Shown piece by piece: positions 316 to 57,155 of a stretch of DNA of 64,000 bases (position 1 is the first letter of the stretch; every line of letters starts with the position of its first letter). The notes beneath the pieces are model-generated. The model was given only the letters and a program-made list of their open reading frames with translations. It did not search any database and was not told the origin of the DNA. Source of the DNA: Tubulanus polymorphus (Eukaryota > Animalia > Nemertea); the NCBI RefSeq assembly GCF_964204645.1, contig NC_134033.1, forward strand, positions 1,570,131-1,634,130, written 5' to 3'. The position numbers and the translations under genes were made by a program.

Positions 316-1170
316 TAACTTAATGTAAGAAATTTATGCTAATGACATCAAAATCATTTTTCAGATACAGATATCTATATGAACCTGTCCAGTTTTTATG
401 TCTACTGTGTTTATTAACGTTTGCTGCTGAATATGAAATTTAAAACAAAACTGAATTTTCTTTCTTTTATTGCAGCAGAAACCACCAACAACAACAGCTG
501 CAGCAGCAGCGGCCGTTCCTGCACGAGTAAGTTTCTATTTTATAATTACGATTTTATGATTACGTTCATTTCTCTAACCGAGACCGAAACTTCTCGCACC
601 TTACACTTTACATCCCTATTTCGTTACCTGATATAAGCATTTCATGAGGCTGTGGTAAACCTCTCGGCCTATGGGCAATTATTTTTTGCGATTTTCATCG
701 ATTTCCAGACACAGATATTAAACCTGCCCAGTTTTTGTGTCTTCTGTGTTTAACGTTTGCTGCTGAATATGAAATATAAAAAAAAAAACTTATTGAATTT
801 TCTTTCTTTTATTGCAACAGAAACCAACAGCTCCAGCAGTGGCAGCGGCCATTCCTGCACGAGTAAGTTCAATTTTATAATTAAGCGTCATTCGTTTCCC
901 ATGTATACCCGCGTAGATGATCCTGTCTTAACATCAACTTTAATCCATTAGCACTCAGGAATTGCACTTAACTTAATGTAAGATATTTATGCTAATGACA
1001 TCAAAATCATTTTTCAGATACAGATATCTATATAAACCTGTCCAGTTTTTGTCTACTGTGTTTATTAACGTTTGCTGCTGTATATGAAATATAAAAAAAA
1101 AAAACTTACTGAATTTTCTTTCTTTTATTGCAACAGAAACCAACAGCAGCAGCACCGAAGGAAGTAAGTC
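316..1170 (+). repeat. Three tandem ~330-bp intron+exon duplicates carrying micro-exons 1-3
   Basis: Near-identical 'aacctgtccagtttt...ttaacgtttgctgctgaatatgaaat...gaattttctttcttttattgcarcag' precedes the exons at 476, 821 and 1137. Confidence 0.85.
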
Positions 1171-4100
1171 AGCATTTTTCTGTATCATGGATTTTCTGTC
1201 GTGTTCATTTCTATCTGACAGCCAATGTATTTCATACCGGGAACAAAGTCATAAAAATTCTCCTGTTCGTTTTATTAAATAACGATACAGAATCAAAACA
1301 ATATAACGAGGCATCCGTCGCTTAGAACTCATTTATTACGTATATTGATACCTACGTGTGCTACTGAACATAAAATAACAAAACTAAAATTAATTCTCTT
1401 TTTTTCTTTCATGGCATCAGTGCAAACAAACAACAATAACAACAACGAAAGAAGTAAGTTTTGGCCATGTTTTTAGTTTTCGCTCATCGCTGACATTACT
1501 GATATCTTTCCTCGCAGTCTTAAATCGGCTCCACTCAATTTCTCTCATGAAATGCTTTCCATGTTCGAACTACACGTGATCATGAACTTGAAAATGAAAA
1601 ATGATTAAATCTAAATGTTGCTCGTTTATTTTATAGGTCACCAGAAAGCGACGCCGATCCGTCGACGAGGTCAGTTTGAATTCTATCGAATCGTTCTCCC
1701 GTTATTACTTTCAATCTGTCTTTTCGTCCATAGATAGGATCTCACAATCGCCAGTGGTATAGGCATTGTTCAGCAATTCAAGGGTGCTAATGTCCTAGAA
1801 AACCTGGCAATCTCATTGAATCAGAAAGATTGGGGAATTTGATAGATTTTTACCAAAATCCTGGAAAACACAGGGGATTTATAAATTCTTAATACTACAA
1901 AATCAGGAAAAAAAGTGGTCTACCGTCGGTCGGTCGGTCGGTCGGTCGGTCGGTCGGTCGGTCGGTCGGTCGGTCGGTCGGTCGGTCGGTCGGTCGGTGA
2001 TGTTCACGTCTCTGAACCCACAGCTTATGGTTATTCATGAAGACTTGACCATTATTTCCTGTTTTAAGTCGTGTAGATTATTATCAATGTGTATCCAAAT
2101 TCTGAATGTTGATTTCAACTTTTTTAAAAATATTTTACAGCAACCTGTAAGCCCGCCGAAGATTCCGCGTGAGGAGGTAAGTTTCAATTTCATTAAATCA
2201 TTTTCGATATCGATGTTAAATATTGATAACCTTAGCCCTGTTTCATAGACTGTATATCAATAATACCCTGGAGGTATTTCTTCAACCTGAGCCCGATTTT
2301 GTAAACCGGATATCAATGTTACCCAGAGTTGCCAACTGTTCCTGATTTTCGGTATTTGTTACTCTTTTATGACAAGAAATACTGATTTGTTTTGTTCGAT
2401 GCATATGAAAAGTATGAAAGATCTAACTGAGGGTCTTACTGTTGATTACTGATTGATTTGAACATTTATTTTCATATTACAATTTGTTACTGATAGCACT
2501 TTTCAGAGGTTGGCAGCCCTGTTGGTTGCCTATAGGTAAATCTTCAACATAGGTGACAACTTCATAATGAAAACCTTGGTAATAACTGAAAAATTTCGAA
2601 ATGATCCCAGCTGGTATTATTTTTTCCCAACATCTATGAAACTTGGCTCTGGTGAACGCCTAGCCTCACTGGCAAGCAATTGTGATACTATCGTGACCAT
2701 ATGTCACTTGTGATCAGTAAGTGTCATTTACCAAAAACATACGTACGTTTTATCGTAATAAATTTTTTGTATTCTTTTTTATAGGACATCAATTTATTCG
2801 ACGACCTTTGGGTAAATATCCTTTTGATCGCCTACTCGTTCTCAGTGAATTTGGAGCCATCCCTTTCATTAGTGGGTGGCTCCATATATACTCGCTTTTA
2901 GGGTTAGCTAGAATTTTTCATGATATTTCATGTTATTTTGATTACTAGAATGATGATTTCCCAGAGCCGCCGCCGCCGGAGCCCGAGGCTCCTACCATTA
3001 TCGTAAGTTGTAAAAGATAATTATTTTCGTAGTTCACCAGATTATTATAATCTGATATTGATTTTCCTGCTGAAATATCCATGTTCTAAGAGATCCCATA
3101 GCATATCTCCACCAAGGTCAAACTTGGCTAAAGCTACGACCAATTTTGCTCGTAGGCTAAAGGCACCTAGTTTTTGCTAGCTTATTTGTTGTTGGAAAAC
3201 ATAAACACTGGTAATTGTGACCGATCTGTTTGCTGCCGCTATACGGTATCATGGGTTCAATTATAAAATGTCATTACTTAGGGGCAGTTCCGTGGGGGGC
3301 TGGTGAATTTGGCTATATTCCTTAAAGATATTTTTTGCCTGACCGCTGCAGCTGCCGCAGTTTAGGGGTCCTAACCAATAAGAATTTTGAAATATGTTCT
3401 AATTTCCTTGTATCTGGGACATTCTGTTGGATCGAGTTACTTTAAAAAAAAAAATGTTATTCTGACTATATTCCGGAATACAATGGAATCTAGTTTGGAT
3501 CCGCTACTGATTAAGCTATATAGAGTAGTATCTTCGGTCCTAAATTAATCACAGCTGAAGCCAGTTATATCTAAAGAGTGTTTGAAAGTAGTCGCACTCG
3601 GTCACAGTTTGTATCGATGCGAATATTCATCTTACCGAGTTCATATTATTCGTAAAATTGGTATTGATAATAGCGTGAAGCAATGTTTTTAAGTGAAACT
3701 AAGAATGTTTAAAAGTTGCGGCTCGGTCACAGTTTTGTATCGATGTGAATATTCTTCAGACCGAGTTAGTAGAATATTGAAATCATGTCACGCAGCATCC
3801 ATCGGTTCAATTATCCTCAAAATAGCCTCTAAATCGAGGGTCAACTAAGAATTTAGATCATGGAATCTTTGATCCGTGGTATAGTTATTCAAAACTTGAT
3901 TTCAAAATTTTTTTTCTTTACATTTCTAGGAATCGGAAATCGTGCGTATTGTGCAAATTGACGTAAGTTTACAATAGACGATTTCAGTTACACATGTTGA
4001 CACCCAGTCACTTTATAAATACCACCTGCCTGCCATCTACTGACAAAAACTTGAACTTTATTCCATAATGTACACTATACCGTTGTGGTTCTCATAAATC

Positions 4101-7100
4101 CGATCATTAGTAACAACCTATAACGTAATAATAACTATTTTTGATGGTTCACCAGATGAGGCTTTTTCTTAAATAGCTTGGTTTACGGGAACCGCCTCCC
4201 GAAATTTGAAGAAAAGTCAAACAAAAGTAGAATTTTTTTTTACTCCCATCCGTGGAACAAATTCAGTGGAAAACGAGCAAAAAAGTTTTTCACCTTCGCC
4301 GAATGAGAATCCCGGCTTGAATGATGAAAAAATTGAAAACTGCGCGTTTATTCTTTTTTTGATCACATTTGTGTGCAGAATTCGAACTTTCCAAGGATCA
4401 TTGTTTTGGACATATGTATATTGCCCTATCGATCGTTCCCTCTTCCTTCAAAAACTGTGTTTATCGCGCTGAGCGAGTTCTTTTTTTTTAAAATTTTCCG
4501 AAATGATATTTCAATAGTCTACCCTGTCAACCAAGCTATTAAAAAAATGCGAGATTTGAGATAATTTATTCTGATTTTCATAAATGCTAAATTGAGCTCT
4601 TGTTTTTCTTTTTATGTAGAGAAATGAATTCCACACGTGCGTGAATGTGCCGGTAAATATTGTGAACATTTCTATTGAATTTACAGTTGAACACAAACGA
4701 CTGCAGATGAAATATGTCTGAATTTTTGTTGACGTTGTTAAACTAAAGTTGATTTTTTATTTTATAGAAGAGGAAGCTCGAGGTACCGGCATCGGTGAGT
4801 TTGAATTTCATCAAATCATTTTACAGTCCGTTCGTCTGTCCGCCTGTCTCTCCGTCTGTCCGCCTGTCTCTCCGTCTGTCCGCCTGTCTCTCCGTCTGTC
4901 CGCCTGTCTCTCCGTCTGTCCGCCTGTCTCTCCGTCTGTCCGTCTGCCGACGGGATCTTGTGAAAGTTTAAGCTTACGACAACTATGATTTGTGATTGCG
5001 ACGAGAGTTTGTCGATGCGAAAAAAAACCACTTTCCAAGTGGCTTGAACATCTATTTTGGGCATGGAAAAAAAGGCACAAGATTTTCGCGATGGTAGTAC
5101 GTGCCTCTTGTGATTGTGGAGAGTTTGTTGAAGCCCTTTTTGCAAGTGGTGTTGTCGTTTCTGCACCTGCAGTTCATGGTTATTCATTTCCATTTTTTAG
5201 TTGTGTAGATTATCATTTTCGTGGCTCACCAAAGATTATTAAGATAATCTGAAATTGAGATTTCCTTCAGAAATATGTTTGAAAATTCTGGATGTTGATT
5301 TCAACTTGTTTTTATTTTATAGGACCCCGTTAGCCCTAAACGGGCACGCGTCAGACCAATCAAAGTAAGTTTGATTTGAGTCAAATCATTTTAAGTGAAG
5401 CTAATTTCAAATAAGTTTATTGATAATCTGGGCAGGGTTTTATAGACCACATCATTTTCTCCTAGGGGTAAATCCTCAACCGTGGCCCGATTTCATAGAC
5501 CGGGTTTCAATGTTGCCCCTAGCGGTAAATCCTCAACATAGGTGACAACCACCATTGTAACAATGATAAACTATGGTAATAACTGACAAATTTTTAAATG
5601 TTTCCATTTCGAACCACTTTTCAAGTGATTTTCGCGTCTCTGCACCCACAGTTCATGGTTATTCATGAAGACTTGACCATTATTTCCTGTTTTAAGTCCT
5701 GTAGATTATTATCATTGTGGTTCACTAATGATTATGGTGATATTTTATTGTTTTCAAAATCTGCATCGGAAAAAGAATTAAAATAGTGTAGAATTCTTCT
5801 GCTTTGGATCTCGTGGCACCAAAAAATCGAAACCAAAAAAAAAGTAAAAATACCTAATTCTGGGGCGGCGGGACAGGGAGAGATCTAGAAATTTATGACA
5901 ATCGGCTTGATGACCATCGCACGGAACTAACTGAATATCATTGGCTGGAAAACTAGGATCCAGCATCGGTAACTCTTTACTAGATCATAACTTCAAACTG
6001 TGGAACTGGGTCCAGAACTGCGGAGCCAGGTTCTGTAACTGTGGGACTGGGTCCAGAACTGCGGAGCCAGGTTCTGTAACTGTGGGACTGGGTCCTGAAC
6101 TGTGGAACCAAGTTTTATTATATTAAGTTGAAATGAATCATTTTCATGTTTTTATAACCAATGGAAATATCGTTTTTTTACTTTTTAGACTGAAACACCT
6201 GCGACGCCGCCGCCGCCGCCGCAAGCTGATGTAAGTTTGAACTATAAGTGAAAATAATTATAATGCATCAAATACACTGAATGTGTTGATCATTACTGAC
6301 ACGTCAATGAACAGGAAGACATACAGAATCCCTGAATCTCTCTGGTCCTACCGAACTATTCACATATAGAATCCCTGAATCTCTCTGGTCCTACCGAGCT
6401 ATTCGCATATAGAATCCCTGAATCTCTGGTCCTACCGAACTATTCACATATAGAATCCCTGAATCTCTCTGGTCCTACCGAGCTATTCGCATATAGAATC
6501 CCTGAATCTCTGGTCCTACCGAGCTATTCACATATAGAATCCCTGAACCTCGCTGGTCCTACCGAGCTATTCACATGTAAAATCCCTGAACCTCGCAGGT
6601 CCTACCGAGCTATTCACATATAGAATCCCTGAATCTCTCTGGTCCTACCGAGCTAATTCTGATACCGAACTCTCCAAACAGTAAGAAATCATTTGATGTT
6701 TCGATGATTTAATCAATGTTGATCGTTTTGTTTTTTCCAGAGAGACGAGATACCGCAACTACGCCGCTCCCCGCGGCTCCGACGCCGTAGAGTAAGTTTG
6801 AATTGTTTACTGAGTTATTGGTATTCCAGACCTGATAACGACTTTGAGAGTAGTGCCTCCATTTTAAGAGCTTTGAAATATCAAAATACTTTCAAGATCA
6901 CAATGATTTCTAGTTGTGGTTATTTCTTATTCAACTACCATTTTTGATATTAGAGCCCTTGCGCTGTCATATATTCAGGTGAAAACTACTCAAATTAGAG
7001 ATATCAAATTGTCAGGTATTTTTAACCGTAATGATATGATCCAGTGCTCACTATTAATACAATAAGAGATGCGCGAAAAAATATCGATGCTCTAATTTGA

Positions 7101-9271
7101 CGACTTCTTGTCGCGCAGACGACGTCTCTGAAATTCACTTTCTGTCCCATTAGATTGTCTCACATACCTAAGCGGTGCCATCTGAAGGGATAGCTGGCGT
7201 GCCAGTTCCCTACTGTTCAAATTTCATGAAAGCGATGATGAAAGGATTATCCAATGAACCGGAACTGCTATACATAAACGGCGAATGTACTATAAAGAGA
7301 AATCAAGAAAAACTTTGAAATTGTGATTTCTTGGTTTGTTTGGAAACTTTGCGCTGCATTAGTTGAGCTCTTGAAATGCTCTTGTTTGCAGGCTCTATTT
7401 CAGCTTTTGATTTCATATAGGGAATTGGCCCCATTATCTCTCTAATTACGATTCGTGTTATCGAAACGCTAGTAAAAACTGCATAAATTTTGACAAATTT
7501 TTGTTGTTGTTTTCTTAAACCTTAACATCATGATTGTTATTATATTATAGGCAGAAAATGCAGCTGCCGCCCCCGCCGCCCCCGTCGATGCGACGGAAAA
7601 TGGTAAGTCTACACATATTCATGATCCTATTTAGATATGTCCGTTTGTAGCCAGACATTTTTAGCAGAGCTGCCCAAACTGTTACTGATTTTCGGTATTT
7701 GTTACTATTTTATGACAAGAAATACTGAATTTGTCTCTGATTTGAACAGAAATATGAAAGATGTTACTGAGCGCCTTACTGTTGATAACTGATGATTAAT
7801 TTAGTTAACTGTAACTCACAACTGTGGAACTGGGTCCTGGATCCCGAGTTCAGAGTTAACTTTAACTCGTAACTGTAGAACTGGATCCTGAGTTCAGAGT
7901 TAACTTTAACTCGTAACTGTAGCACTGGATTCTGTGTTCAGAGTTAAATCTAACTCATCTGTGGAACTGGATCCTGAGTTCAGAATTAACTCTCGCAAAT
8001 GTAGAACTAGATTCTGAGATCAGAGTTAACTCATTTGTGGAAATGGATCCAGCACGTTAAAATGCCCAAAATCATGTCACTCCTGATGGAGTATGGCGGC
8101 AGTATAACGGACTTTGACTGTATTGTCCACGTTGTAAAACTCCTATTGATCGTCCATGATTTAATGAAATACTAATAATTTTTCTCATTTATTTATTTTA
8201 CAGTCATCGAAGAGATAAGGCGGAATATCGCCGCGGATCCGCGGTATCTACTTAATTTTTTGACGCGATGTAAGTACAACTTTTTGCATTTATACCTCTC
8301 TCCTCTCTCTTTCCACTGATCACATCATTTTTCATCCCCCCCCCCGCTCGTGTTAAGTATCCTCAACGTACATTGAATAAGGTACTGGCTGCGTACAGAT
8401 GGCGCAAAAATACACTCGTTGATACGCGATGAAATTAGTTTATTTTCGAACTCGATTTTCGCTTAGAAAATTCAAATATAATCAAACGAATTTTTGTTCG
8501 AGCAACTTTCGCGTTGAGGAGAGAATCCCACAATGATAATAAAAAGTCCAAAAATTAAACTTCGAGATAGTAGTTTATTTCAACGTTTCGACTATATCGA
8601 AGTTTCATTTTCGGACTTTTTATTATCATTGTGAGATTCTCTCCTCATCGCGTCAACACGGATATAGTGTTCTACCAATCGTGAACTTTCGCGTATTGAT
8701 AAAGCGATGAGTCGGCTACAGTTCAATCGGGAAGTGTCGACGAAATTGAAGCACGGTAATTGAGGAGTAACCACTAGCTGATCCTCGCTTGCCACAGTAA
8801 CGCAGCCACTGCCTCATCAAGCCCCGGGTATTATTGACGGTACATCCTAGAAATAATTGAAATCGAAAAACGAGATCATTGTTCCCTTTCTGTTTACAAC
8901 AGAATTCTGTATAACAAAAGCCTATTTATTTTCGTGTGGCGTCAACCATTTTCAGACACATCGTGAAATATCAGTAACTAACGATACACCGCGCCGTGGT
9001 GTAGACGCACTGTAGTGCTATTCCCGTTATTCAACACACTTGGGTGGAATTTTTCAAAATTTTCAAATTATCTCCAGCACTATAGGGTATTGATCAGTCA
9101 GCACTGAAAGGGTTAATAAGATAAAAACCAACTTTATTTACAAATTAAAAGAATTCTAAAATCGAGAATTTATTTATGGAAACAATCTAAAACATAAGAA
9201 CACGACGTTTCGATCTCACCCTAGAGATCATCGTCAGGTGTGAGATATTGACTGAAAACGGATATATATAT

Positions 9272-9341
<70 letters not shown>

Positions 9342-11329
9342 CAGGTTAATTGAGTGATTTGGTGAGTAAGTAATTAGTGTTTGGCAAGGCATGAAGTAAT
9401 ATACTCCATATACCATATGTCGCTCATTGTTTTAAACACATACCGCATCAAATTTGGTTTAAATACGACCAGTGAAACCGCGCGGTCTGAATAAACCATC
9501 GTTTTTGCATCCATTTTACGCTGTTAATTGAAGCATTGCCAAAAAAGTCTTCTTGAACTGATTTGAATCGGAGAAAATTGACTGCATTTTATGAACTAGA
9601 TCAATTTTAACAAGTTTCCATGCCTACCATTTAGAATTATTTTCAAATCATCATGAATCATGGTTTGCGGTTATGGCAGGGGTTCACCTGATGGTTAAGT
9701 GATGGTTCGCTGATGGTATGACACCTATTTATTTGTTCATGTGACTGAACAATGCAATGATACGATGTTTAGTTACTTCTATGCTGTACTGTAGTAACCC
9801 TGTCCCGACGACCCTAAACTCTCAACCAGCCCATCAATGTCACTCATCGAGACTGATATTGTATTCTTTCCGCATCCCACATTCTGCTGCATGATGATGT
9901 CACAAATTATTGGCAACCAATCACACTTCAAGTGGAAAGTCAGCCATTTTGTATTAATGAGATTACTAGCTACACTGGGTTCACTGTAAATCTACAAGGG
10001 CTGAGCCAGGATTTTTGGAAGGTTTACTGAAGGGCACATGAGCACTCGTGAAGGGATGAAAGGGGTCTTAAGTGTTTCTCCCAAGAAAATTTTGAAATTT
10101 TGTTGCACGAGGCTATTCGATAGCCATCATGAGAGAATACTTTATCTTTCTTTATAAAATGGAAAAAGAAATTCCTAAAATATCTTGAGGGCACCTGAAG
10201 ATATTAAAGGCGGGGGACTGGATCCGCCCTTGATATATTAATTGTTTCTCCTGATGGTTAATGTATTTCTTTCTATTTTATATTTTACAGTGGAACCAAT
10301 ATTAATTGAGACGGTGGAGGATGGTCCGGAGGACGTGAAAGAGGCCATAGACCTCTTTCACTTGAACCTTGGTCCTGTCTTGGATGACCAGCTGGCAGAC
10401 CCCGTTCCAGCTGCTGCCTCCCCGGATAGGCGCCCTGGGCAGCGGACCCTCCGGCAGCCGCACCCTTTTGCACAGAGGTGGTCCCGTCGCGTGGACGGGC
10501 GGCTGTGGGAGGGGGAGTTACGGGAGGTAAGCATCATCTCAACATTAACTGTTTTTTTTTATATTTCTCTCGGTTTTGATTTCGAATGTCAATTTCTCTC
10601 ACACGAACAGTTTTTATGAATCACTTATAATATCTTTTCTTTAATAATACTTTCATTTTCAGCGAGCCATCGTCATTTTTTTTTTTTGCTTTATTTTCTA
10701 ACCCTTTAGAATATTGTTTCCCAGATCGCGACGATTTATCTCTTTGTTTATATGTAATCAATTGTTCCATTATTTCAGCTCGGTTACTGATCCGAAAATT
10801 TTCTGTAAAAAATCACTTTTCAACCGATCATTTAGTAAATGAATGTTTTCTTTTTTTGCAGACGGGCACGCGCACCGCTCGGCATCGAAGACGACGCCGT
10901 CCGGCGGTTCGTCGCGGTGGTGTGGCGCCTCCCGAGGGGGAGCGACGCGGTGGCGGAGGGGAGGAGATCGGCGTCGTGGTAGTTCCGGAGGTGGTGGAGG
11001 CGGTGCCGGTGCCGGAGCCGGAGCCGGAACTGGAACCGGTGTTTGAACCGGTCCCGGAGCCGGAGCCGGAGCCGGAACCGGTAGAAGAGGAGATGGTCGT
11101 GGAGGTTGAGGAGGTAAGAGGGGTTCCTCCTGCCCCCGTGGAGCCGTTGGCCGCTGCCCCGGTTTCGGCGCTGGACAGAGTTCTGTCCAGCGACCGATGC
11201 CGCGCCGAAGTGCGGGTGGTGGCTCGCGGTTCCGTGGGACCGTGGGAGGAGCTTCTATCTTCGTGTAGATCAAAGGCTCTTTTACATGATTTAAAATCGG
11301 TCTTGTTTAGGCGTGGGTACAGGGAGTAG
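476..11329 (+). CDS. Micro-exon gene (>=18 exons, 5'-partial) encoding a ~450-aa Pro/Ala/Arg/Glu-rich, probably disordered protein of unknown function
   Basis: AG/GT-bounded exons with pyrimidine tracts: 476-526 QKPPTTTAAAAAAVPAR; 821-862 KPTAPAVAAAIPAR; 1137-1163 KPTAAAPKE; 1421-1453 CKQTTITTTKE; 1637-1669 VTRKRRRSVDE; 2141-2176 QPVSPPKIPREE; 2785-2811 DINLFDDLW; 2949-3002 NDDFPEPPPPEPEAPTII; 3930-3962 ESEIVRIVQID; 4620-4652 RNEFHTCVNVP; 4768-4794 KRKLEVPAS; 5323-5364 DPVSPKRARVRPIK; 6189-6230 TETPATPPPPPQAD; 6741-6791 RDEIPQLRRSPRLRRRR; 7551-7602 (ends phase 1); 8204-8269 (phase 1/1, VIEEIRRNIAADPRYLLNFLTR); 10291-10526 (phase 1/0); 10862-11329 (TAG). All phases are compatible and the 1353 nt contain no internal stop. 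No start codon was found in the window. Confidence 0.8.
1926..1998. repeat. (CGGT)n microsatellite
   Basis: About 18 direct copies of cggt. Confidence 0.95.
2324..2521. mobile_element. MITE with CAGRGYTGCCAAC terminal inverted repeats (possibly hAT-type)
   Basis: Starts cagagttgccaac and ends gttggcagccctg. The paralogous intron at ~5500-5545 shows the empty site. A truncated second copy lies at ~7665-7795. Confidence 0.7.
4160..4550. mobile_element. MITE-like element with ~28-bp imperfect TIRs
   Basis: gctttttcttaaatagcttggtttacggg versus ccctgtcaaccaagctattaaaaaaatgc. Confidence 0.6.
4833..4945. repeat. 20-bp minisatellite (gtctgtccgcctgtctctcc)
   Basis: About 5.5 direct copies. Confidence 0.9.
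6323..6655. repeat. 43-bp minisatellite
   Basis: About 8 copies of tagaatccctgaatctctctggtcctaccgagctattcacata (41-43 bp). An inverted array lies at ~16620-16970. Confidence 0.9.
7815..8052. repeat. Dispersed 'aactgtggaactggatcc' repeat family, tandem array
   Basis: The same motif occurs at ~5995-6110, 54560-54767, ~56990 and ~58890. Confidence 0.75.
8510..8652. repeat. 62-bp-arm inverted repeat (hairpin)
   Basis: 8510-8571 pairs with 8591-8652 with about 5 mismatches and a 19-nt spacer. Confidence 0.9.
9125..9260 (-). mobile_element. Penelope-like element pLTR remnant with minimal hammerhead ribozyme-like motif
   Basis: Minus strand: acac-CTGACGA-t-gatctc-tagggt-gagatc-GAAAC-GTC-gtgt followed by AATAAA signals, next to a (TA)n tract. 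Confidence 0.5.
9262..9340. repeat. (TA)n microsatellite
   Basis: Direct observation. Confidence 0.95.
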
Positions 11330-11514
11330 ATGAATCGTAAATGATCCAGTAACGAGGTAGGCTTGTTTGTTCACTGCTTCACTGGGTCATTTACGATTCA
11401 ACTGCTTCCTGTATCCGGGTAATCAGCAGTTCAACGAAACAGTTTTTTTCATCGGTCATGGTAGTCAGTTAATCAGCAGTAGTAGTGTAGTCCTTCAGTC
11501 AAGTTACGCAGTCA

Positions 11515-12478
11515 TACTAGTCATTTTTTGGTTAGTAGTAGTCACTAAGTTGTAGTCAGTGACTTGTAGTAGTCATTTTGTCATTAATAGTAATAGTATT
11601 GGTGACTCTGTAGCAGTCACTCAATCACAGCAGTCATGATCAGTAGTAGTCAGTAAGTCTTTATAAGTCAGTTGTAGTAGTCATTTTTTGGTTAATAGTA
11701 GTCACTAAGTTGTAGTCAGTGACTCGTAGTAGTCATTTTGTCATTAATAGTAATAGTATTGGTGACTCTGTAGCAGTCACTCAATCACAGCAGTCATGAT
11801 CAGTAGTAGTCAGTAAGTCTTTATAAGTCAGTTGTAGTAGTCATTTTTTGGTTAATAGTAGTCACTAAGTTGTAGTCAGTGACTCGTAGTAGTCATTTTG
11901 TCATTAATAGTAATAGTATTGGTGACTCTGTAGCAGTCACTCAATCACAGTAGTCATGATCAGTAGTAGTCAGTAAGTCTTTATAAGTCAGTTGTAGTAG
12001 TCATTTTTTGGTTAGTAGTAGTCACTAAGTTGTAGTCAGTGACTCGTAGTAGTCATTTTGTCATTAATAGTAATAGTATTGGTGACTCTGTAGCAGTCAC
12101 TCAATCACAGTAGTCATGATCAGTAGTAGTCAGTAAGTCTTTATAAGTCAGTTGTAGTAGTCATTTTTTGGTTAGTAGTAGTCACTAAGTTGTAGTCAGT
12201 GACTCGTAGTAGTCATTTTGTCATTAATAGTAATAGTATTGGTGACTCTGTAGCAGTCACTCAATCACAGCAGTCATGATCAGTAGTAGTCAGTAAGTCT
12301 TTATAAGTCAGTTGTAGTAGTCATTTTTTGGTTAATAGTAGTCACTAAGTTGTAGTCAGTGACTCGTAGTAGTCATTTTGTCATTAATAGTAATAGTATT
12401 GGTGACTCTGTAGCAGTCACTCAATCACAGTAGTCATGTTCAGTAGTAGTCAGTAAGTCTTTATAAGTCAGTGACTCG
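11515..12478. repeat. 160-bp tandem satellite, about 6 copies
   Basis: gtcactaagt recurs at 11541, 11701, 11861, 12021, 12181 and 12341. The unit is built from gtagtca-like sub-repeats. Confidence 0.95.
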
Positions 12479-16153: not shown

Positions 16154-16344
16154 ATACCAGCATGAAAATGTTTTTTGCTTCTCACTCTCAAGTTTTGTCA
16201 GTATTTGAGATAATTTAGGATTTCTTTTGATACATAATCTTCTGATTATCGGTCGAACAGGAAAGTGTAATTGATAACGGATAGAGCGAGATAGTTTTAC
16301 AACTCCCCCTCCCACTGCCAAGGTTCAGATGAAAGAGATCGAAA

Positions 16345-17553
16345 AATAACCACAACTAGAAATCATTGTGATCTTGAAAGTATTTTGATATTTCAAAGCT
16401 CTTAAAAATGGAGGCACTACTCTCAAAGTCGTTATCAGATCTGGAATACCACTAACTCAGTAAATAATTCAAACTTACTCGACGGCATTGTAGCCGCGGG
16501 GAGCGGCGCAGTTGCGGTATCTCGTCTCTCTGGAAAAAACAAAACGATCAACATTGATTAAATCATCGAAACATTAAATGATTTCTTACTGTTTGGAGAA
16601 TTCGGTATCAGAATAACTTGGTAGGACCGGAAAGGTTCAGGGATTCTACATGTGAATAGCTCGGTAGGACCGGAAAGGTTCAGGGATTCTACATGTGAAT
16701 AGCTCGGTAGGACCGGAAAGGTTCAGGGATTCTATATGTGAATACCTCGGTAGGACCAGAAAGGTTCAGGGATTCTATATGTGAATAGCTCGGTTCAGGG
16801 ATTCTATATGTGAATAGCTCGGTAGGACCGGAAAGATTCAGGGATTCTATATGTGAATAGCTCGGTAGGACCGGAGAGATTCAGGGATTCTATATGTGAA
16901 TAGCTCGGTAGGACCGGAAAGGTTCAGGGATTCTTATATGTGAATAGCTCGGTAGGACCAGAGATTCAGGGATAATTCTTTTTCCGATGCAAATTTTGAA
17001 AACAATAAAATATCCTCATAATCATTGGTGAACCACAATGATAATAATCTACATGACTTAAAACAGGAAATAATGGTCAAGTCTTCATGAATAACCATGA
17101 ACTGTGGGTGCAGAGACGCGAAAATCACTTGAAAAGTGGTTTGAACGCTCGGACAACTGGAAACATTTAAAAATTTGTCAGTTTTTACCATAGTTTATCA
17201 TTGTTACAATGGTGGTTGTCACCTATGTTGAGGATTTACCGCTAGGGGCAACATTGAAACCCGGTCTATGAAATCGGGCCAAGGTTGAGGATTTACCCCT
17301 AGGAGAAAATGATGTGGTCTATAAAACCCTGCCCAGATTATCGAACTTAAAATGATTTGACGCAAATCAAACTTACTTTCACGGCACCAACGCGGGCTCT
17401 TTTCGATGAGATGATGCTTACCTCCCGTAACTCCCCCTCCCACAGCCGCCCGTCCACGCGACGGGACCACCTCTGCGCAGCAGGGTGCGGCTGCCGGAGG
17501 GTCCGCTGCCTAGGGCGCCTAACTGGGAAGGCAGCAGCTGGAACGGGGTCTGC
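16345..17553 (-). pseudogene. Inverted, rearranged partial paralog of the micro-exon gene
   Basis: Minus-strand order: 3' half of exon 17 with its donor (17553-17421), an exon-12-like fragment (SKRARVGAVK|gtaagt, ~17405-17377), intron-12 sequence, the 43-bp array, then an intact exon-14 copy at 16529-16479 (RDEIPQLRRSPRLQCRR). Confidence 0.7.
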
Positions 17554-18249
17554 ATTCGTTTATCTAGAGATCTGCATCAATTGGTGACATTGAGAATTCT
17601 TTCCTTCAGGTCGGCCAATTTTAAGTCTGCCGGCCTTTTCCTATTATAACTTTGTTACCCGCACCCAAATTTTTATTAGGGAATAGAGAAATGTATCTGG
17701 GCTCTTCCCGGTGACCATTGAGTCGTCTCGGCTGTGTTACAAATAGCTTAGTTTCTTCTGTCATTCAACGTGCAGAAGTTGCGAGCGCGATAATTAGTTA
17801 AAACAAAGCGTAAAGAGGAGGCAGCCATTATATAACGTAGGAAGAAAAAGTATAATTAGACTTCGATAATTTTGCAAAATGATTTATTTCATTAGAATTG
17901 AAATGGAGACGTTCATTACCAATTCGGAGCAAACTTAGATTAAAATCTAGCAAAATTAGATTACGATTGAAATGGACGTTCATAACCGTATTTCCAAATG
18001 GGTTTTACTTCCCTGAATTTAGCTGTGTCGTTATTAAGACTGTCGTTGAAACTATTGTTTTCTGTATGAATTCTGCGCCGTTTACTATTTCCTCCGTGAA
18101 GGGCGGACAACGTTATAGTTCGATTCAAATGCGGTAGAATCTTATGGTTTTTGTGTGGTGTCTATAATTTGAGAATGTGCGTATCTAACACTTATTTTTG
18201 TATCAATACCCGGTTAATGATCCATCGGTTATTATCATACAAATCTTTT

Positions 18250-23790: not shown

Positions 23791-26700
23791 CCATCGCGAT
23801 ATTCCGCTTATGATCGTTAACGTTTACGTTTTGATTAAAGTAGCGATCGACTGGCACCGCTATCATTTACCGTCAACGCGCGGTGGTCAACTGAACCTAA
23901 TGTCAACTCACCGCGTGATAAACTGGCACTGCTATCATTTACCGTCAACGCGCAGTGGTCAACTGAATCTACTGTCAACTCACCACGCGATCGACTGGCA
24001 CTGCTATCATTTACTGTCAATGCGCGGTGGTCATCTAACCCTGCGATCAACTCAGTACTGTCAACTCAAACTGCGGTCAACGCTACTCTCGGCTAAATGT
24101 CGACTCAATGGTCAGATCTAATGTCAACTCTATCTTGGAGTCATTCAGTCTTATTACTCCACCAACATTCAACGGTCAACTGGGCAAACAACTCAAGCAA
24201 ATCAGGTAATTATCTTTCTCATCACTTCTCACTTTAAAATTTGTAGTTTTGTGTAATATTTTGATGTGTTTGAAATCTGTATTTATATTTTGTTTTATTT
24301 CAGTTTCTCCAATTTGCTGTTGTTACTATGAACCGGAAAACACTGCTTCGCAAAAACAACGTCGTACAGTGTGAACAAATCTGATCAATCAAAATCCACT
24401 ATATTGCTATCAGTTGCATCTCGTGGACAGTATCGCTATCAGTTGCGTCTCGTGGACAGTATCGCTATCAGTTGCTTCTCGTGGACAGTATCGCTATCAG
24501 TTGCTTCTCGTGGACGGTATCGCTATCAGTTGCATCTCGTGGACGGTATCGCTATCAGTTGCGTCTCGTGGACGGTATCGCTATCAGTTGCTTCTCGTGG
24601 ACGGTATCGCTATCAGTTGCGTCTCGTGGACGGTATCGCTATCAGTTGCGTCTCGTGGACGGTATCGCTATCAGTTGCGTCTCGTGGACGGTATCGCTAT
24701 CAGTTGCGTCTCGTGGACAGTATCGCTATCAGTTCCATCTACTGGACAAACAACTCAAGCAAATCAGGTAAATATTTCTTTCTCATAATTCCTTGTATTC
24801 GAATTACTTTGTAGCTTTGTAATATTTTGATCGGATTGAAATCTATATTTATATTTTGATTATTTTGTTGTTTTTCAGTTTCTACAATTTGCTGCTGTTA
24901 TATGAACTGTAAAGCAGGATGTGCCGAACAGTGTGAAAAATCGCATTCAGAAAAAAATGTACCAAACCAATGTGATTACAAAACATCAATCTTGCGATGT
25001 AAAGTAACATGGAAACAATTCGATCTATCGAAACATCAGGTTTGCTGTTATCAGTCAAGAGACTATCTGATATAAATGCGTGAGAGTCACCTGCTATGCT
25101 ATCCAGTCTTACGGGACCGTCTCATACAATGCGATATCGAGTATGAAAGTTGAATGATACCCACAGCGAAAAGGCTTATATGATACAATACGTCATGTTC
25201 ATCAGTAACAAAGAAACGAGACGAACTGAGTTGAGACACCAAGGATCAAGTAACCCGCTATCTGTCGTGGATCCAGTAACCCGCTATCTGTCATAGATCC
25301 AGTAACCCGCTATCTGTCATGGATCCAGTAACCCGCTATCTGTCGTGGATTCAGTAACCCGCTATCTGTCGTAGATCCAGTAACCCGCTATCTGTCATAG
25401 GGCTGTCGTATATAGTCCAATACGTCACGATCGCGAGTAATAACGAAACGGGTCGAATCACAAACGTTCCAGTGCACAAATAACTCGCTAGCGTTCCTTC
25501 TCGCTTGCGATCTCGAGATATTTTCCAGAAAGAAAAATTTGGTTGAAAGTGTACGTTGTGTAATCGGGTAGTGGAAGGAGTTAAAGGAGCTGAATCACCT
25601 CGTTCGTTCGTTCGTTACTACGTTTGGTTACTTCGCGTAATTAGACTCGTTTTAAAATTCGTAAACGCTTCATCACCATCGCGATATTCCGCTTATGATC
25701 GTTTACGTTTTGATTAAAGTAGCGATCGACTGGCACTGCTATCATTTACCGTCAACACGCGGTGGTCAACTGAACCTAATGGCAACTCACCGCATGATAA
25801 ACTGGCTCTGCTATCATTTACCGTCAACGCGCGGTGGTCAACTGAACCTAATGGCAACTCACCGCGTGATAAACTGGCTCTGCTATCATTTACCGTCAAC
25901 GTGCGGTGGTCATCTAACCCTGCGATCAACTCAGTACTGTCAACTCAAACTGCGGTCAACGCTACTCTCGGCTAAATGTCGACTCAATGGTCAGATCTAA
26001 TGTCAATTCTATCTTGGAGTCATTCAGTCTTATTACTCCACCAACATTCAACGGTCAACTGGGCAAACAACTCAAGCAAATCAGGTAATTATCTTTCTCA
26101 TCATTTCTCACTTTAAAATTTGTAGTTTTGTGTAATATTTTGATGTGTTTGAAATCTGTATTTATATTTTGTTTTATTTCAGTTTCTCCAATTTGCTGTT
26201 GTTACTATGAACCGGAAAACACTGCTTCGCAAAAACAACGTCGTACAGTGTGAACAAATCTGATCAATCAAAATCCACTATATTGCTATCAGTTGCATCT
26301 CGTGGAAAGTATCGCTATCAGTTGCATCTCGTGGACGGTATCGCTATCAGTTGCGTCTCGTGGACGGTATCGCTATCAGTTGCATCTCGTGGACAGTATC
26401 GCTATCAGTTGCATCTCGTGGACAGTATCGCTATCAGTTGCATCTCGTGGACGGTATCGCTATCAGTTGCGTCTCGTGGACGGTATCGCTATCAGTTGCG
26501 TCTCGTGGACGGTATCGCTATCAGTTGCGTCTCGTGGACGGTATCGCTATCAGTTGCGTCTCGTGGACGGTATCGCTATCAGTTGCGTCTCGTGGACGGT
26601 ATCGCTATCAGTTGCGTCTCGTGGACGGTATCGCTATCAGTTGCGTCTCGTGGACGGTATCGCTATCAGTTGCGTCTCGTGGACGGTATCGCTATCAGTT

Positions 26701-29700
26701 GCGTCTCGTGGACGGTATCGCTATCAGTTGCGTCTCGTGGACGGTATCGCTATCAGTTGCGTCTCGTGGACGGTATCGCTATCAGTTGCGTCTCGTGGAC
26801 GGTATCGCTATCAGTTCCATCAACTGGACAAACAACTCAAGCAAATCAGGTAAATATTTCTTTCTCATAATTCCTTGTATTCGAATTACTTTGTAGCTTT
26901 GTAATATTTTGATCGGATTGAAATTTATATTTTGATTATTTTGTTGTTTTTCAGTTTCTACAATTTGCTGCTGTTATGATATGAACTGTAAAGCAGGATG
27001 TGCCGAACAGTGTGAAAAATCGCATTCAGAAAAAAATGTACCAAACCAATGTGATTACAAAACATCAATGTTGCGATGTAAAGTAACACAGAAACAATTC
27101 AATCTATCGAAACATCAGGTTTGCTGTTATCAGTCAAGAGACTATCTGATATAAATGCGTGAGAGTCACCTGCTATGCTATCCAGTCTTACGGGACCGTC
27201 TCATACAATGCGATATCGAGTATGAAAGTTGAATGATACCCACAGCGAAAAGGCTTATATGATACAATACGTCATGTTCATCAGTAACAAAGAAACGAGA
27301 CGAACTGAGTTGAGACACCAAGGATCAAGTAACCCGCTATCTGTCGTGGATCCAGTAACCCGCTATCTGTCGTGGATTCAGTAACCCGCTATCTGTCGTA
27401 GATCCAGTAACCCGCTATCTGTCATAGGGCTGTCGTATATAGTCCAATACGTCACGATCGCGAGTAATAACGAAACAGGTCGAATCACAAACGTTCCAGT
27501 GCACAAATAACTCGCTAGCGTTCCTTCTCGCTTGCGATCTCGAGATATTTTCCAGAAAGAAAAATTTGGTTGAAAGTGTACGTTGTGTAATCGGGTAGTG
27601 GAAGGAGTTAAAGGAGCTGAATCGCCTCGTTCGTTCGTTCGTTCGTTACTACGTTTGGTTACTTCGCGTAATTAGACTCGTTTTAAAATTCGTAAATGCT
27701 TCATCGCCATCGCGATATTCCGCTTATGATCGTTTACGTTTACGTTTTGATTAAAGTAGCGATCGACTGGCACTGCTATCATTTACCGTCAACGCGCGGT
27801 GGTCAACTGAACCTAATGTCAACTCACCGCGTGATAAACTGGCACTGCTATCATTTACCGTCAACGCACGGTGGTCAACCGAACCTAATGTCAACTCACC
27901 GCGTGATAAACTGGCACTGTTATCATTTACCGTCAACGCGCGGTGGTCAACCGAACCTAATGTCCACTCACCGCGTGATAAACTGGCACTGCTATCATTT
28001 ACCGTCAACGCGCGGTGGTCAACTGAACCTAATGTCAACTCACCGCGTGATAAACTGGCACTGCTATCATTTACCGTCAACGCGCGGTGGTCAACTGAAC
28101 CTAATGTCAACTCACCGCGTAATAAACTGGCTCTGCTATCATTTACCGTCAACGCGCGGTGGTCAACTGAATCTACTGTCAACTCACCACGCGATTGACT
28201 GGCACTGCTATCATTTACCGTCAACGCGCGGTGGTCATCTAACCCTGCGATCAACTCAGTACTGTCAACTCAAACTGCGGTCAACGCTACTCTCAGCTAA
28301 ATGTCGACTCAATGGTCAGATCTAATGTCAACTCTATCTTGGAGTCATTCAGTCTTATTACTCCACCAACATTCAACGGTCAACTGGGCAAACAACTCAA
28401 GCAAATCAGGTAATTATCTTTCTCATCACTTCTCACTTTAAAATTTGTAGTTTTGTGTAATATTTTGATGTGTTTTAAATCTGTATTTATATTTTGTTTT
28501 ATCATTTCAGTTTCTCCAATTTGCTGTTGTTACTATGAACCGGAAAACACTGCTTCGCAAAAACAACGTCGTACAGTGTGAACAAATCTGATCAATCAAA
28601 ATCCACTATATTGCTATCAGTTGCATCTCTTGGACAGTATCGCTATCAGTTGCATCTCGTGGACAGTATCGCTATCAGTTGCTTCTCGTGGACGGTATCG
28701 CTATCAGTTGCGTCTCGTGGACGGTATCGCTATCAGTTGCGTCTCGTGGACGGTATCGCTATCAGTTGCGTCTCGTGGACGGTATCGCTATCAGTTGCGT
28801 CTCGTGGACGGTATCGCTATCAGTTGCGTCTCGTGGACGGTATCGCTATCAGTTGCGTCTCGTGGACGGTATCGCTATCAGTTGCGTCTCGTGGACGGTA
28901 TCGCTATCAGTTGCGTCTCGTGGACGGTATCGCTATCAGTTGCGTCTCGTGGACGGTATCGCTATCAGTTGCGTCTCGTGGACGGTATCGCTATCAGTTG
29001 CGTCTCGTGGACAGTATCGCTATCAGTTCCATCAACTGGACAAACAACTCAAGCAAATCAGGTAAATATTTCTTTCTCATAATTCCTTGTATTCGAATTA
29101 CTTTATAGATTTGTTACATTTTGATGGGATTGAAATCTATATTTATGTTTCGATTATTTTGTTGTTTTTCAGTTTCTACAATTTGCTGCTGTTATGATAT
29201 GGGACAGTCGAAGCGCAAAGTCGATACTCAAGAGAAATTGATACTCAAAGAATTTTGGATATCAAATCTGTGAAATTGAGACCAAAATGATCAAATGTGC
29301 GTCTCAATCCTATGAAATTGAGATCAAATGTTCCATATTGAAATATCAAAATTGTCTATCAAATCTTTGAAATCGAGACCAAATTGATCCATGATCCGTG
29401 AAACTATCATTTCCTTCAGAATTTAAATATGGAATCTCAGTTATTTGCCTAATTCAATTTTCTTGCCAACAGGATTTGAACCTGTAAATGGATAAATCAT
29501 TCTGGATGATAATGATGTATTACTAAACGGCAGGACGCAGTTCTATAGGGTTCTGAGTTCAGATTTAACACAAAAAGTTAAATCATGCGTTAGCAATGTA
29601 CTAATTACTAATTCTAGTTGAAAGATTTGATTATTTGAGTCTTCGAACTCACGAAGCTGAACTTAACAAAGGAAACTTCTATGATTTCCAATGAATTGCC

Positions 29701-55536: not shown

Positions 55537-56622
55537 CTATTTAGAATCACACAAATAATCTATCAGTAAAATGTGTTTAGCTTTTTTTCTAAAGGAGCCG
55601 TTTGTTGCGCAGTAAACGAAGAAATTTACGGATGAATCAAAAACACTGAGCAGAATTCCTACTTTACGCATGATCATTTGTTCAACGACAGTTAGACCGT
55701 GACGTAATCCAAACCCCTTTTTGAGGTTAACTAGCAGTCGGTCCAGCGATGCGGGAATTTCACAGATAAAAAATATAGCTACAATTATAAGAACCACTTT
55801 TAACATTTTGAGTTCGGTAGATTTTTCACCGGGCGCCGCTGCGTCCGCGTGAAATTGTTTCTTTCGATTTAGTTTTCTAAATATCATAATTCCGAACAAA
55901 GTTAGATTTATCACAATTAGAAGAATTACTGGTGCAAGAACAGTCATGAAAATATAGGAATTAGAAACGTCTCTCCCTGCACGCGAGGATGAATAAAAGA
56001 ATGGTGTTCGAATTCTTTTCGCACCAAAAACTCCCATTGTATGTAAATAAATAAAACAAGGTCGTGTGGGTCTTCCGGGTAAATATTGTGGAAAATAATA
56101 CGGCCAGAAACTAACTACGGAAGAAAATGCGTTTAAAACCGATAGAAAAATGATTTGTTTTCTGTTCCAGAATCGTCTGAAATACAGCGGACTCGCGACA
56201 ACCAGAAGTCTTTCAAAACTGATTATAACTACGGACCAATTTTTTGCCATTTGAAACGTGTGAAACAGTGGTCGAACCCAGATTATAATTTCGTGTCCAA
56301 AAAGCCAATCATCGTAACGCCCGAGAACTTTTAGATTCTGTTGATATTTGATAATTAGTATCCGAAGTGGATAAAGAAGAAACACTGAAAATACGAACAG
56401 TAAATCAAACCAGGCAAGAATGGTTATAGTTTGATAAGTGTCGCGACCGATCTTTCTGAATACTAGAATAGAAAATGAATTCAGAAACATTCCGAAAACT
56501 GTAGCCGGAAAATATCCGTACACGTAAATACTGTAACTGAAAACGTGATCCCATCTAACGGGTGGATACCGGCTGACGTGGCAGGGATCAAATTTAGTCG
56601 TTGAGATAGTGGTAGAATTCAT
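55537..56622 (-). CDS. Rhodopsin-like (class A) GPCR, FMRFamide-receptor-like/invertebrate peptide- or chemoreceptor-like, single coding exon, 361 aa
   Basis: Seven hydrophobic segments with TM1 GMFLN, TM2 LAWFD, TM3 SFERL..V..PL, TM6 FFICEIP and TM7 SSVNFFVYC...SFR. The N-terminus MNST carries a glycosylation sequon. The ATG at 56622 is preceded by a candidate acceptor (ttacag, exon start 56637). Confidence 0.92.
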   Translation of the reverse strand: MNSTTISTTKFDPCHVSRYPPVRWDHVFSYSIYVYGYFPATVFGMFLNSFSILVFRKIGRDTYQTITILAWFDLLFVFSVFLLYPLRILIIKYQQNLKVLGRYDDWLFGHEIIIWVRPLFHTFQMAKNWSVVIISFERLLVVASPLYFRRFWNRKQIIFLSVLNAFSSVVSFWPYYFPQYLPGRPTRPCFIYLHTMGVFGAKRIRTPFFYSSSRAGRDVSNSYIFMTVLAPVILLIVINLTLFGIMIFRKLNRKKQFHADAAAPGEKSTELKMLKVVLIIVAIFFICEIPASLDRLLVNLKKGFGLRHGLTVVEQMIMRKVGILLSVFDSSVNFFVYCATNGSFRKKAKHILLIDYLCDSK

Positions 56623-57155
56623 GTTGAAGCTCGTAACCTGTAATCTGCGACTCTGCACATAGTAACACACAGCTATCTCTCACTTACCCTGTTATCAAAG
56701 ACACCTCTCTCTCTCTACTTCCATAGGATTTAAATTACGATATACATATGCACTGTGCTGGAAAATTCAGATTTTACAAAGATGAATCTCTTTATGTCAT
56801 ATATAAAGTCAAGTGAACTCTACGACTGTCACGATACCAGACACTTTTAGAACTCTGAGGAGATTAAACTTACTACAAGTCACTTTACAGTCTCATTGAG
56901 AACATATTGTATCATCGATCAAGAAATAAGATTTTACAAATCAGGTGTATTTAACGTAACTGGGCCCAGAGTCAAATTTAACCCCAACAACTGTGGAACT
57001 GGATACAGGTCAAATTGTGATTCACGCAACCGTGGAAACGCAAAGTTTTGATTTATTTATAAAATGTGCGATGCGTTCAGAAAAAACATGAACATTATAG
57101 ACTTATGTTCAAATTTTCGTTATTTTAGATCAATTAACGGATAAATATTTTCATT

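Follow-up and report, generated by a model that had tools for sequence, protein, structure and literature searches.

The window analysed here is a stretch of 64,000 nucleotides (nt) from the ribbon worm Tubulanus polymorphus (Nemertea), corresponding to C9:1570131-1634130 of the assembly searched (G000; 268 Mb, 77 contigs). Its positions 476-11329 on the plus strand are the 3′ half (whole-gene exons 23-40) of a 40-exon gene. The gene is real and unusual, and its architecture works like that of a schistosome micro-exon gene (MEG) or of the exon arrays of collagen and the titin PEVK region. Taking all evidence together, we consider it fairly probable that this is a multi-copy animal gene of 40 exons which was built from cassettes, codes for an orphan and probably nuclear protein, and includes most of its exons by default. 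A first-pass annotation of the window had described a run of 14 symmetric micro-exons and four larger exons at this place. It missed the upstream half of the gene and the family of nine copies, both of which change the picture.

Window exons 1-18 are whole-gene exons 23-40, and window micro-exons 1-14 are whole-gene exons 23-36. The coordinates and lengths of the 14 micro-exons in the first-pass annotation (51, 42, 27, 33, 33, 36, 27, 54, 33, 33, 27, 42, 42 and 51 nt) were reproduced exactly by a script. All 14 are in phase 0, stop-free and bounded by AG acceptors and GTAAGT-like donors. The acceptors all consist of a T-rich tract followed by AG, and the donors are GTAAGT (ten exons), GTAAAT (two), GTCAGT (one) and GTGAGT (one). 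The four larger exons were confirmed to follow without a frame break: window exons 1-18 join into a single frame of 450 codons, and the sole stop is the TAG at 11327-11329. The exons had also been described as islands with a higher content of guanine and cytosine (GC). This was found overall (0.563 in the 14 micro-exons vs. 0.364 in their introns), but not for micro-exons 4, 7 and 9, where the GC content was only 0.30-0.42.

The micro-exon pattern is not due to chance. Region 400-11400 was screened with a simple filter: candidates had to show an AG preceded by ≥12 pyrimidines within 17 positions, a stretch that is open in frame 0 and divisible by three in length, and a donor of the form GT[ACG]A[GA]T. 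There were 16 candidates on the plus strand and none on the minus strand. In 300 first-order Markov simulations, the mean number of candidates was 1.06 and the maximum was 6. The number of GTRAGT hexamers was 16 on the plus strand vs. 2 on the minus strand.

The 20 kb upstream of the window were scanned with the same splice-plus-frame filter and then read directly. This inspection, which had been proposed as a way to find the start exon, yielded an ATG exon and, in all, 22 exons before window exon 1. The ATG exon (MAPKRKQI) is located at L005:8741-8764, which is window position −11259, i.e. 11.3 kb upstream of the window. The other upstream exons are three copies of a five-exon block (PEVLEEIPPP / ITVEAEIHF / NRxTATNT / NSAT..TTAPE / RKQTAAKA) with a period of ~1.73 kb, one micro-exon, two larger exons of 81 and 120 nt (whole-gene exons 18-19) and three micro-exons, which sit between these larger exons and window exon 1. 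The whole gene spans ~22.6 kb (C9:1558872-1581459), with 2184 coding nt and 728 amino acids (aa). Every one of whole-gene exons 1-36 is symmetric (phase 0-0). The majority of the exons (35 of 40) are ≤54 nt long, 23 of them ≤36 nt, and together these 35 make up 56% of the coding sequence. The introns of the full gene model have a length of 100-3423 nt (median: 351 nt).

The gene is present in several copies. Probes taken from the first 470 nt of the window, from window exons 17 and 18 and from the 120-nt upstream exon gave 9 to 11 genome matches each, with 93-100% identity. A search for paralogues with the spliced protein, above all with exons 16-18, had been suggested beforehand; exons 17 and 18 are multi-copy in the same genome. 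Nine gene copies were near-identical (96-100% identity): two on C9, six on C11 and one on C8. Extra degenerate pieces were found besides. The copies are located 0.4-3 Mb from a chromosome end (C9: 0.96 and 1.57 of 16.5 Mb; C11: 0.39-3.0 of 14.0 Mb; C8: 13.96 of 16.7 Mb). A repetitive neighbour gene, 16-17 kb downstream (window ~25-29 kb), stands beside every copy in the same orientation. As this neighbour was duplicated together with the gene, the block must measure 40 kb or more.

The 3′ halves of the eight other copies were compared exon by exon, including flanks of 100 nt. The 15 non-cassette exons (window exons 4-18) were present in all copies, and 120 of 120 exon-copies kept the AG, the donor hexamer and the open frame. 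All eight distinct InDels in exons were 3 or 6 nt long, compared with 6 of 41 InDels in the intron flanks that were multiples of three. The ratio of the proportions of non-synonymous and synonymous differences (pN/pS) was 0.31 over window exons 4-18, with each variant counted once. For micro-exons 4-14 in the predicted frame it was 0.28 (21 synonymous and 18 non-synonymous differences; binomial p = 9e-5), and control frames 1 and 2 gave 1.06 and 2.88.

The copies form two old sequence classes around exons 6 and 14, and the intron flanks of these classes diverge by 17-23% (~23% at exon 14). The two classes of exon 14 differ at 10 of 51 nt; seven of the affected codons are silent, and one is amino-acid-changing. 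The class splits at exons 6 and 14 group the copies differently, meaning that the copies are mosaics which arose by exchange between copies. The comparison of the copies shows that the micro-exons are translated sequence under purifying selection, and this constraint is the strongest evidence here for coding. The visible protein variation lies between gene copies (cassette number and in-frame InDels) and not between splice forms.

The origin of the exons was examined by BLAST clustering of the 150 nt on either side of every exon. The acceptor-side introns of 16 exons formed one cluster (whole-gene exons 4-6, 9-11, 14-16 and 20-26, including window exons 1-4). This cluster flanks the larger whole-gene exons 18-19 on both sides, and the donor sides of 11 exons formed a matching cluster. 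Window exons 6, 11 and 12 made up a second intron cluster, and exons 6 and 12 share the peptide (Q/D)PVSPxK. When the units with window exons 1-4 and upstream exon 22 were aligned directly, ~170 nt of intron were alignable before each exon. Three such exon+intron cassettes of ~300-345 bp each stand in tandem at 190-1163 on the plus strand, and here the exon and the last ~170 nt of the intron can be aligned. For window exons 5, 7-10 and 13 (6 of 14), no intron homology was detectable in the clustering of flanks. Hence, roughly half of the 14 micro-exons demonstrably stem from cassette duplication, and we infer the same for the rest.

The copies differ in how many KPT..(I/V)PAR cassettes precede the KPTAAAPKE exon, with two in the window copy and 2, 3, 4 or 6 in the others. 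In all copies, the splice sites of these cassettes are intact and the cassette lengths are divisible by three. Gain and loss of cassettes is still active. Much of the gene appears to have arisen as exon+intron cassettes were duplicated in tandem again and again, with gain and loss continuing. It is carried in a segmental duplication (≥40 kb) that occurs ~9 times in the end-proximal parts of three chromosomes, and its copies exchange sequence with one another.

The predicted protein consists of 12% A, 12% P, 11% E, 10% T and 10% R, and only 22 of 726 residues are aromatic. K/R clusters occur at several places (MAPKRK, TRKRRRS, KRKLE, SPKRARVRPIK, RRSPRLRRRR and RHRRRRRP), and the protein also carries S/T-P sites and the acidic-hydrophobic motif DINLFDDLW. 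There is no signal peptide or hydrophobic leader: exon 1 reads MAPKRKQI, and the next exon reads PEVLEEIPPP. A nuclear, disordered protein was suggested at first pass, and a non-secreted, disordered, basic and proline-rich character fits this start, the lack of a leader and the K/R clusters. Most likely, the protein is largely disordered, presumably nuclear and associated with chromatin or nucleic acids, and acts via short linear motifs.

Homology searches were run exon by exon, with the short micro-exons giving no meaningful query. In Pfam, with E up to 10, nothing was found except a low-complexity PARP match far below the cutoff. A word search of a library of 5.8 billion proteins with window exon 18 gave only two low-complexity chance matches, and a HMMER profile of the 65-aa C-terminal module had 0 matches among 1.84 billion representatives. 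Sequence searches of the PDB gave nothing credible. In the ESM Atlas, scores were ≤0.83 or there was no match, and none was usable. AlphaFold2 returned an all-helical model of the C-terminal module at low confidence (mean predicted local distance difference test score of 62). A KH domain was considered for whole-gene exons 18-19 and found no support: searched separately, these exons matched no Pfam family (E up to 10) and had no usable Atlas match. In its searched parts, the gene product is an orphan protein.

That the pattern is not a gene, but due to chance or to repeats which carry splice-like motifs, is effectively refuted as an explanation. Part of the introns and exons is indeed repeat-derived. 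However, 16 filter candidates stand against ~1 expected and 0 on the other strand, the frame of 450 codons is uninterrupted over 18 exons, and selection is confined to the predicted frame, and we give this explanation next to no weight. Another explanation is that the copies are decaying or silent passengers, i.e. young segmental duplicates or cargo of a mobile block whose frames are open only through recency and which make no functional protein. The near-identity of the copies would fit this, as would the scrambled partial pseudo-copies beside each copy and on C8, the absence of RNA from our findings and the lack of homologues anywhere in the libraries searched. A pN/pS of 0.28-0.31 that is specific to the predicted frame is difficult to reconcile with passengers, and the InDels in exons are in frame without exception. 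The segments around exons 6 and 14 are ~20% diverged, yet the peptide is kept. Moreover, a second family of genes with a 45%-identical C-terminus shares the last three exons and ends at the same stop position, meaning that the C-terminal module is old and conserved. We regard silent passengers as quite unlikely.

The preferred reading, a cassette-built gene with default exon inclusion, also has to be weighed against diversification by splicing. The statement in the first-pass annotation that any subset of exons could be skipped in frame is true by arithmetic, as all of these exons are symmetric. MEG-like diversification would mean that the symmetric micro-exons are skipped in many combinations, with one gene, or every copy of it, giving many protein variants with different short linear motifs. 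It would draw on whole-gene exons 1-36, which are all phase 0-0 with every subset skippable in frame, on the tandem acceptor of window exon 1 (starts at 476 and 479) and on the family itself, which is multi-copy and variable, as MEGs are. However, the donors are nearly all GTAAGT and the acceptors are strong, which points to default inclusion. Regulated micro-exons elsewhere usually have conserved flanking introns; here, the intron flanks are no more conserved than the exons (7.2% vs. 5.7% unique variants). No RNA was obtained from the runs examined, and some micro-exons look required, as their DNA or at least their peptide is the same in all copies. We find MEG-like diversification doubtful, with some chance of being right.

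Default inclusion of most exons is suggested because the splice sites are uniformly strong and near-consensus, and we lean to it because, in addition, the flanks show no extra conservation and several micro-exons are invariant across copies. What speaks for combinatorial skipping is the arithmetic of symmetric exons alone, and mixing at the splice level may occur. A two-layer version is also conceivable: an end-proximal ampliconic orphan family in a ribbon-worm genome, in which a nuclear disordered protein would be diversified by cassette turnover between copies and, on top of this, by combinatorial in-frame skipping, much as the secreted antigens of schistosomes are diversified through MEGs. 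We think it unlikely that both layers apply.

Several points weigh against the cassette-built coding gene with default inclusion that we prefer. The runs examined gave no transcript support on 401-6300; the only run with the same species label that may be RNA has no contig there, which is no proof of silence. The measure of constraint comes from paralogous copies within one genome and no other species, and it is limited to the 3′ half. The copies exchange sequence and hence are not independent lineages. The pN/pS values rest on 68 unique differences over exons 4-18, of which 39 are in micro-exons. Nuclear localisation and disorder are read from composition and motifs only.

The three sequencing runs that match the locus are genomic DNA: on 401-6300, their contigs are continuous through the introns, without GT..AG joints at exon borders. 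With regard to retrocopies, there were no adjacent exon 17-exon 18 matches among the genome matches, and no junction-spanning query was made. The apparent variants in the contigs of the DNA runs (at 5353-5361, 2146, 2173 and 3943) match differences between paralogous copies in number and place; for example, four changes in exon 12 equal differences between such copies. This means that the short-read contigs mix copies, and their variants are not to be read as alleles.

The exons of the window, all on the plus strand, are as follows. Micro-exons 1-3 are of one cassette type. Micro-exon 1 (whole-gene exon 23) is located at 476-526 (51 nt, phase 0, QKPPTTTAAAAAAVPAR), micro-exon 2 at 821-862 (42 nt, KPTAPAVAAAIPAR) and micro-exon 3 at 1137-1163 (27 nt, KPTAAAPKE). 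Micro-exon 1 has tandem acceptor AGs at 475 and 478, giving starts at 476 or 479. Two pairs of tandem acceptors that are 3 nt apart were seen, ..gcagCAGaaa.. at this exon (window 471-480) and ..atagCAGatg.. at the preceding exon (L006:9889-9895). They could lead to the gain or loss of one Gln, and the same exons begin with Q, T or K in other copies.

Micro-exon 4 (1421-1453, 33 nt, CKQTTITTTKE) is 30, 33 or 36 nt long in other copies. Micro-exon 5 (1637-1669, 33 nt, VTRKRRRSVDE) contains a basic cluster, and its GTCAGT donor is the same in all copies. The intron ends beside micro-exon 6 (2141-2176, 36 nt, QPVSPPKIPREE) are homologous to those of micro-exons 11 and 12. The acidic-hydrophobic motif DINLFDDLW is the whole of micro-exon 7 (2785-2811, 27 nt), with the same peptide in nine of nine copies. 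Two micro-exons have identical DNA in all nine copies, namely micro-exon 8 (2949-3002, 54 nt, NDDFPEPPPPEPEAPTII) and micro-exon 10 (4620-4652, 33 nt, RNEFHTCVNVP); between them is micro-exon 9 (3930-3962, 33 nt, ESEIVRIVQID).

Sequences resembling a nuclear localisation signal are found in micro-exon 11 (4768-4794, 27 nt, KRKLEVPAS) and in micro-exon 12 (5323-5364, 42 nt, DPVSPKRARVRPIK), which has an S-P-K-R site and is paralogous to micro-exon 6. Micro-exon 13 (6189-6230, 42 nt, TETPATPPPPPQAD) varies between 39, 42 and 45 nt among the other copies, and micro-exon 14 (6741-6791, 51 nt, RDEIPQLRRSPRLRRRR) is the one with two old sequence classes among copies. Window exon 15 (7551-7602, 52 nt) changes the phase from 0 to 1 and is 46 nt long in three copies. 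Window exon 16 (8204-8269, 66 nt, IEEIRRNIAADPRYLLNFLTR) stays in phase 1 at both ends. Window exon 17 (10291-10526, 236 nt) returns from phase 1 to 0, and its 3′ part is ~50% identical to the second multi-copy family. The terminal window exon 18 (10862-11329) has 465 nt plus the TAG and codes for an R-rich stretch, a (PE)n acidic tract and then the conserved 65-aa C-terminal module.

The second orphan family comprises at least 40 nearly identical genes in arrays with a spacing of ~30-46 kb. These are located at C3:0.42-1.33 Mb, C6:0.65-1.75 Mb, C8:15.07-16.31 Mb and C12:3.3 Mb (example: L007:1527-5129). Only the last three exons are common to this family and the micro-exon gene, with the same phases and the same stop position. 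The C-terminal 65 aa have 45% identity and follow the pattern ...EVxVVAR...W.E.L.S...LL.DLK..L...GY. The 5′ part of the second family has fewer and larger small exons (39-84 nt). As the second family has the C-terminal module but a different 5′ part, the module is older than the micro-exon array. The large intron of the second family contains a 61-bp satellite.

Partial copies and repeats occur in and around the gene. A scrambled, inverted partial gene copy with its parts in the wrong order lies at window 16300-17560 on the minus strand. Its parts are the 3′ portion of exon 17 together with the donor, sequence resembling intron 12, the 43-bp repeat of intron 13 and an exon 14 copy. Similar scrambled fragments stand beside other gene copies, with a denser cluster at C8:13.952-13.955 Mb. 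Repeats within the introns are (GTCG)18 at 1925-1998, a 20-mer repeated 5.7 times at 4833-4946 and a 43-mer repeated 7.9 times at 6319-6655. A 160-bp satellite (six copies, 98% identical) is found at 11518-12472, ~190 nt past the stop codon, and is followed by further short tandem arrays up to ~13040.

The neighbour at window ~25000-29200 on the plus strand is a GC-rich, repetitive, coding-looking region with internal tandem units and open reading frames at 26250-26896, 27696-28325 and 28578-29108; it had no credible Pfam match. Further downstream, at 55537-56670 on the minus strand, there is a single-exon open reading frame of 377 aa for a rhodopsin-type G-protein-coupled receptor (PF00001). 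It has at least 40 paralogues with 75-88% identity, mostly on the same chromosome.

MEGs are specific to Schistosomatidae and have 10-20 exons; their products are secreted, carry a signal peptide at the N-terminus and are no longer than 189 aa, and isoforms generated by exon skipping are documented (bioRxiv 10.1101/2023.06.21.545858). The Tubulanus gene resembles them in its long runs of very short, symmetric, multiple-of-3 exons separated by much longer introns, and both belong to multi-copy, lineage-restricted families that have no homologues elsewhere and were spread through duplication (10.1101/2023.06.21.545858). In contrast to MEGs, the Tubulanus gene comprises 40 exons and codes for 728 aa, with a composition of nuclear type and without a signal peptide. 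It also comes from another phylum (Nemertea), and no sequence similarity was found in the exon-wise searches. Membership in the MEG family is ruled out by the same features, i.e. the missing signal peptide, the 728 aa, the 40 exons, the phylum and the lack of similarity. The first-pass description of the architecture as MEG-like was borne out for the long run of symmetric phase-0 micro-exons, while most of the features that define Schistosoma MEGs fail. No paper linking micro-exon genes with nemerteans was found in the literature collection searched.

Exon arrays amplified by cassettes are known from fibrillar collagen (54-bp exons), titin (PEVK exons) and tropoelastin. In these, short symmetric exons arose via tandem duplication of exon plus intron, multi-exon blocks included, and the product is of low complexity or disordered. 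The Tubulanus gene is like the collagen and titin PEVK arrays in that neighbouring exons have homologous flanking introns; here, the upstream five-exon block is triplicated. The difference is that those genes code for structural proteins, extracellular or sarcomeric, in which a peptide repeats regularly, whereas here only the KPT..(I/V)PAR and (Q/D)PVSPxK subsets repeat and the other micro-exon motifs are unrelated. Moreover, the whole Tubulanus gene is itself multi-copy.

Ampliconic families, such as the amplicons of mammalian sex chromosomes and the Stellate- and Dox-type families of Drosophila, share with this gene the near-identical copies in large duplicated blocks, the exchange between copies and the orphan, basic, nuclear-type products. 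The likeness here is in genomic behaviour only. The SRRM3/4-dependent neuronal micro-exons of bilaterians are isolated exons in otherwise ordinary genes; their flanking introns are conserved, and their splice sites are weak. They also are in-frame exons of ≤51 nt that add few residues. In the Tubulanus gene, 56% of the coding sequence consists of micro-exons (35 in all), and the splice sites are strong.

To our knowledge, genes that consist almost wholly of symmetric micro-exons are textbook for schistosome MEGs only, which code for small secreted proteins. The Tubulanus gene has the same architecture at a larger scale, with 36 consecutive phase-0 exons, in another phylum and in a long, non-secreted protein of nuclear type. 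It is also a hard case for gene finders. Its introns still record how the gene was built up by cassette duplication, and the paralogues with two to six cassettes show the process under way. If the two-layer diversification were true, it could be the mark of a conflict inside the cell that evolves rapidly, for example over the control of the germline, chromatin or transposons, and not of a host-parasite interaction.

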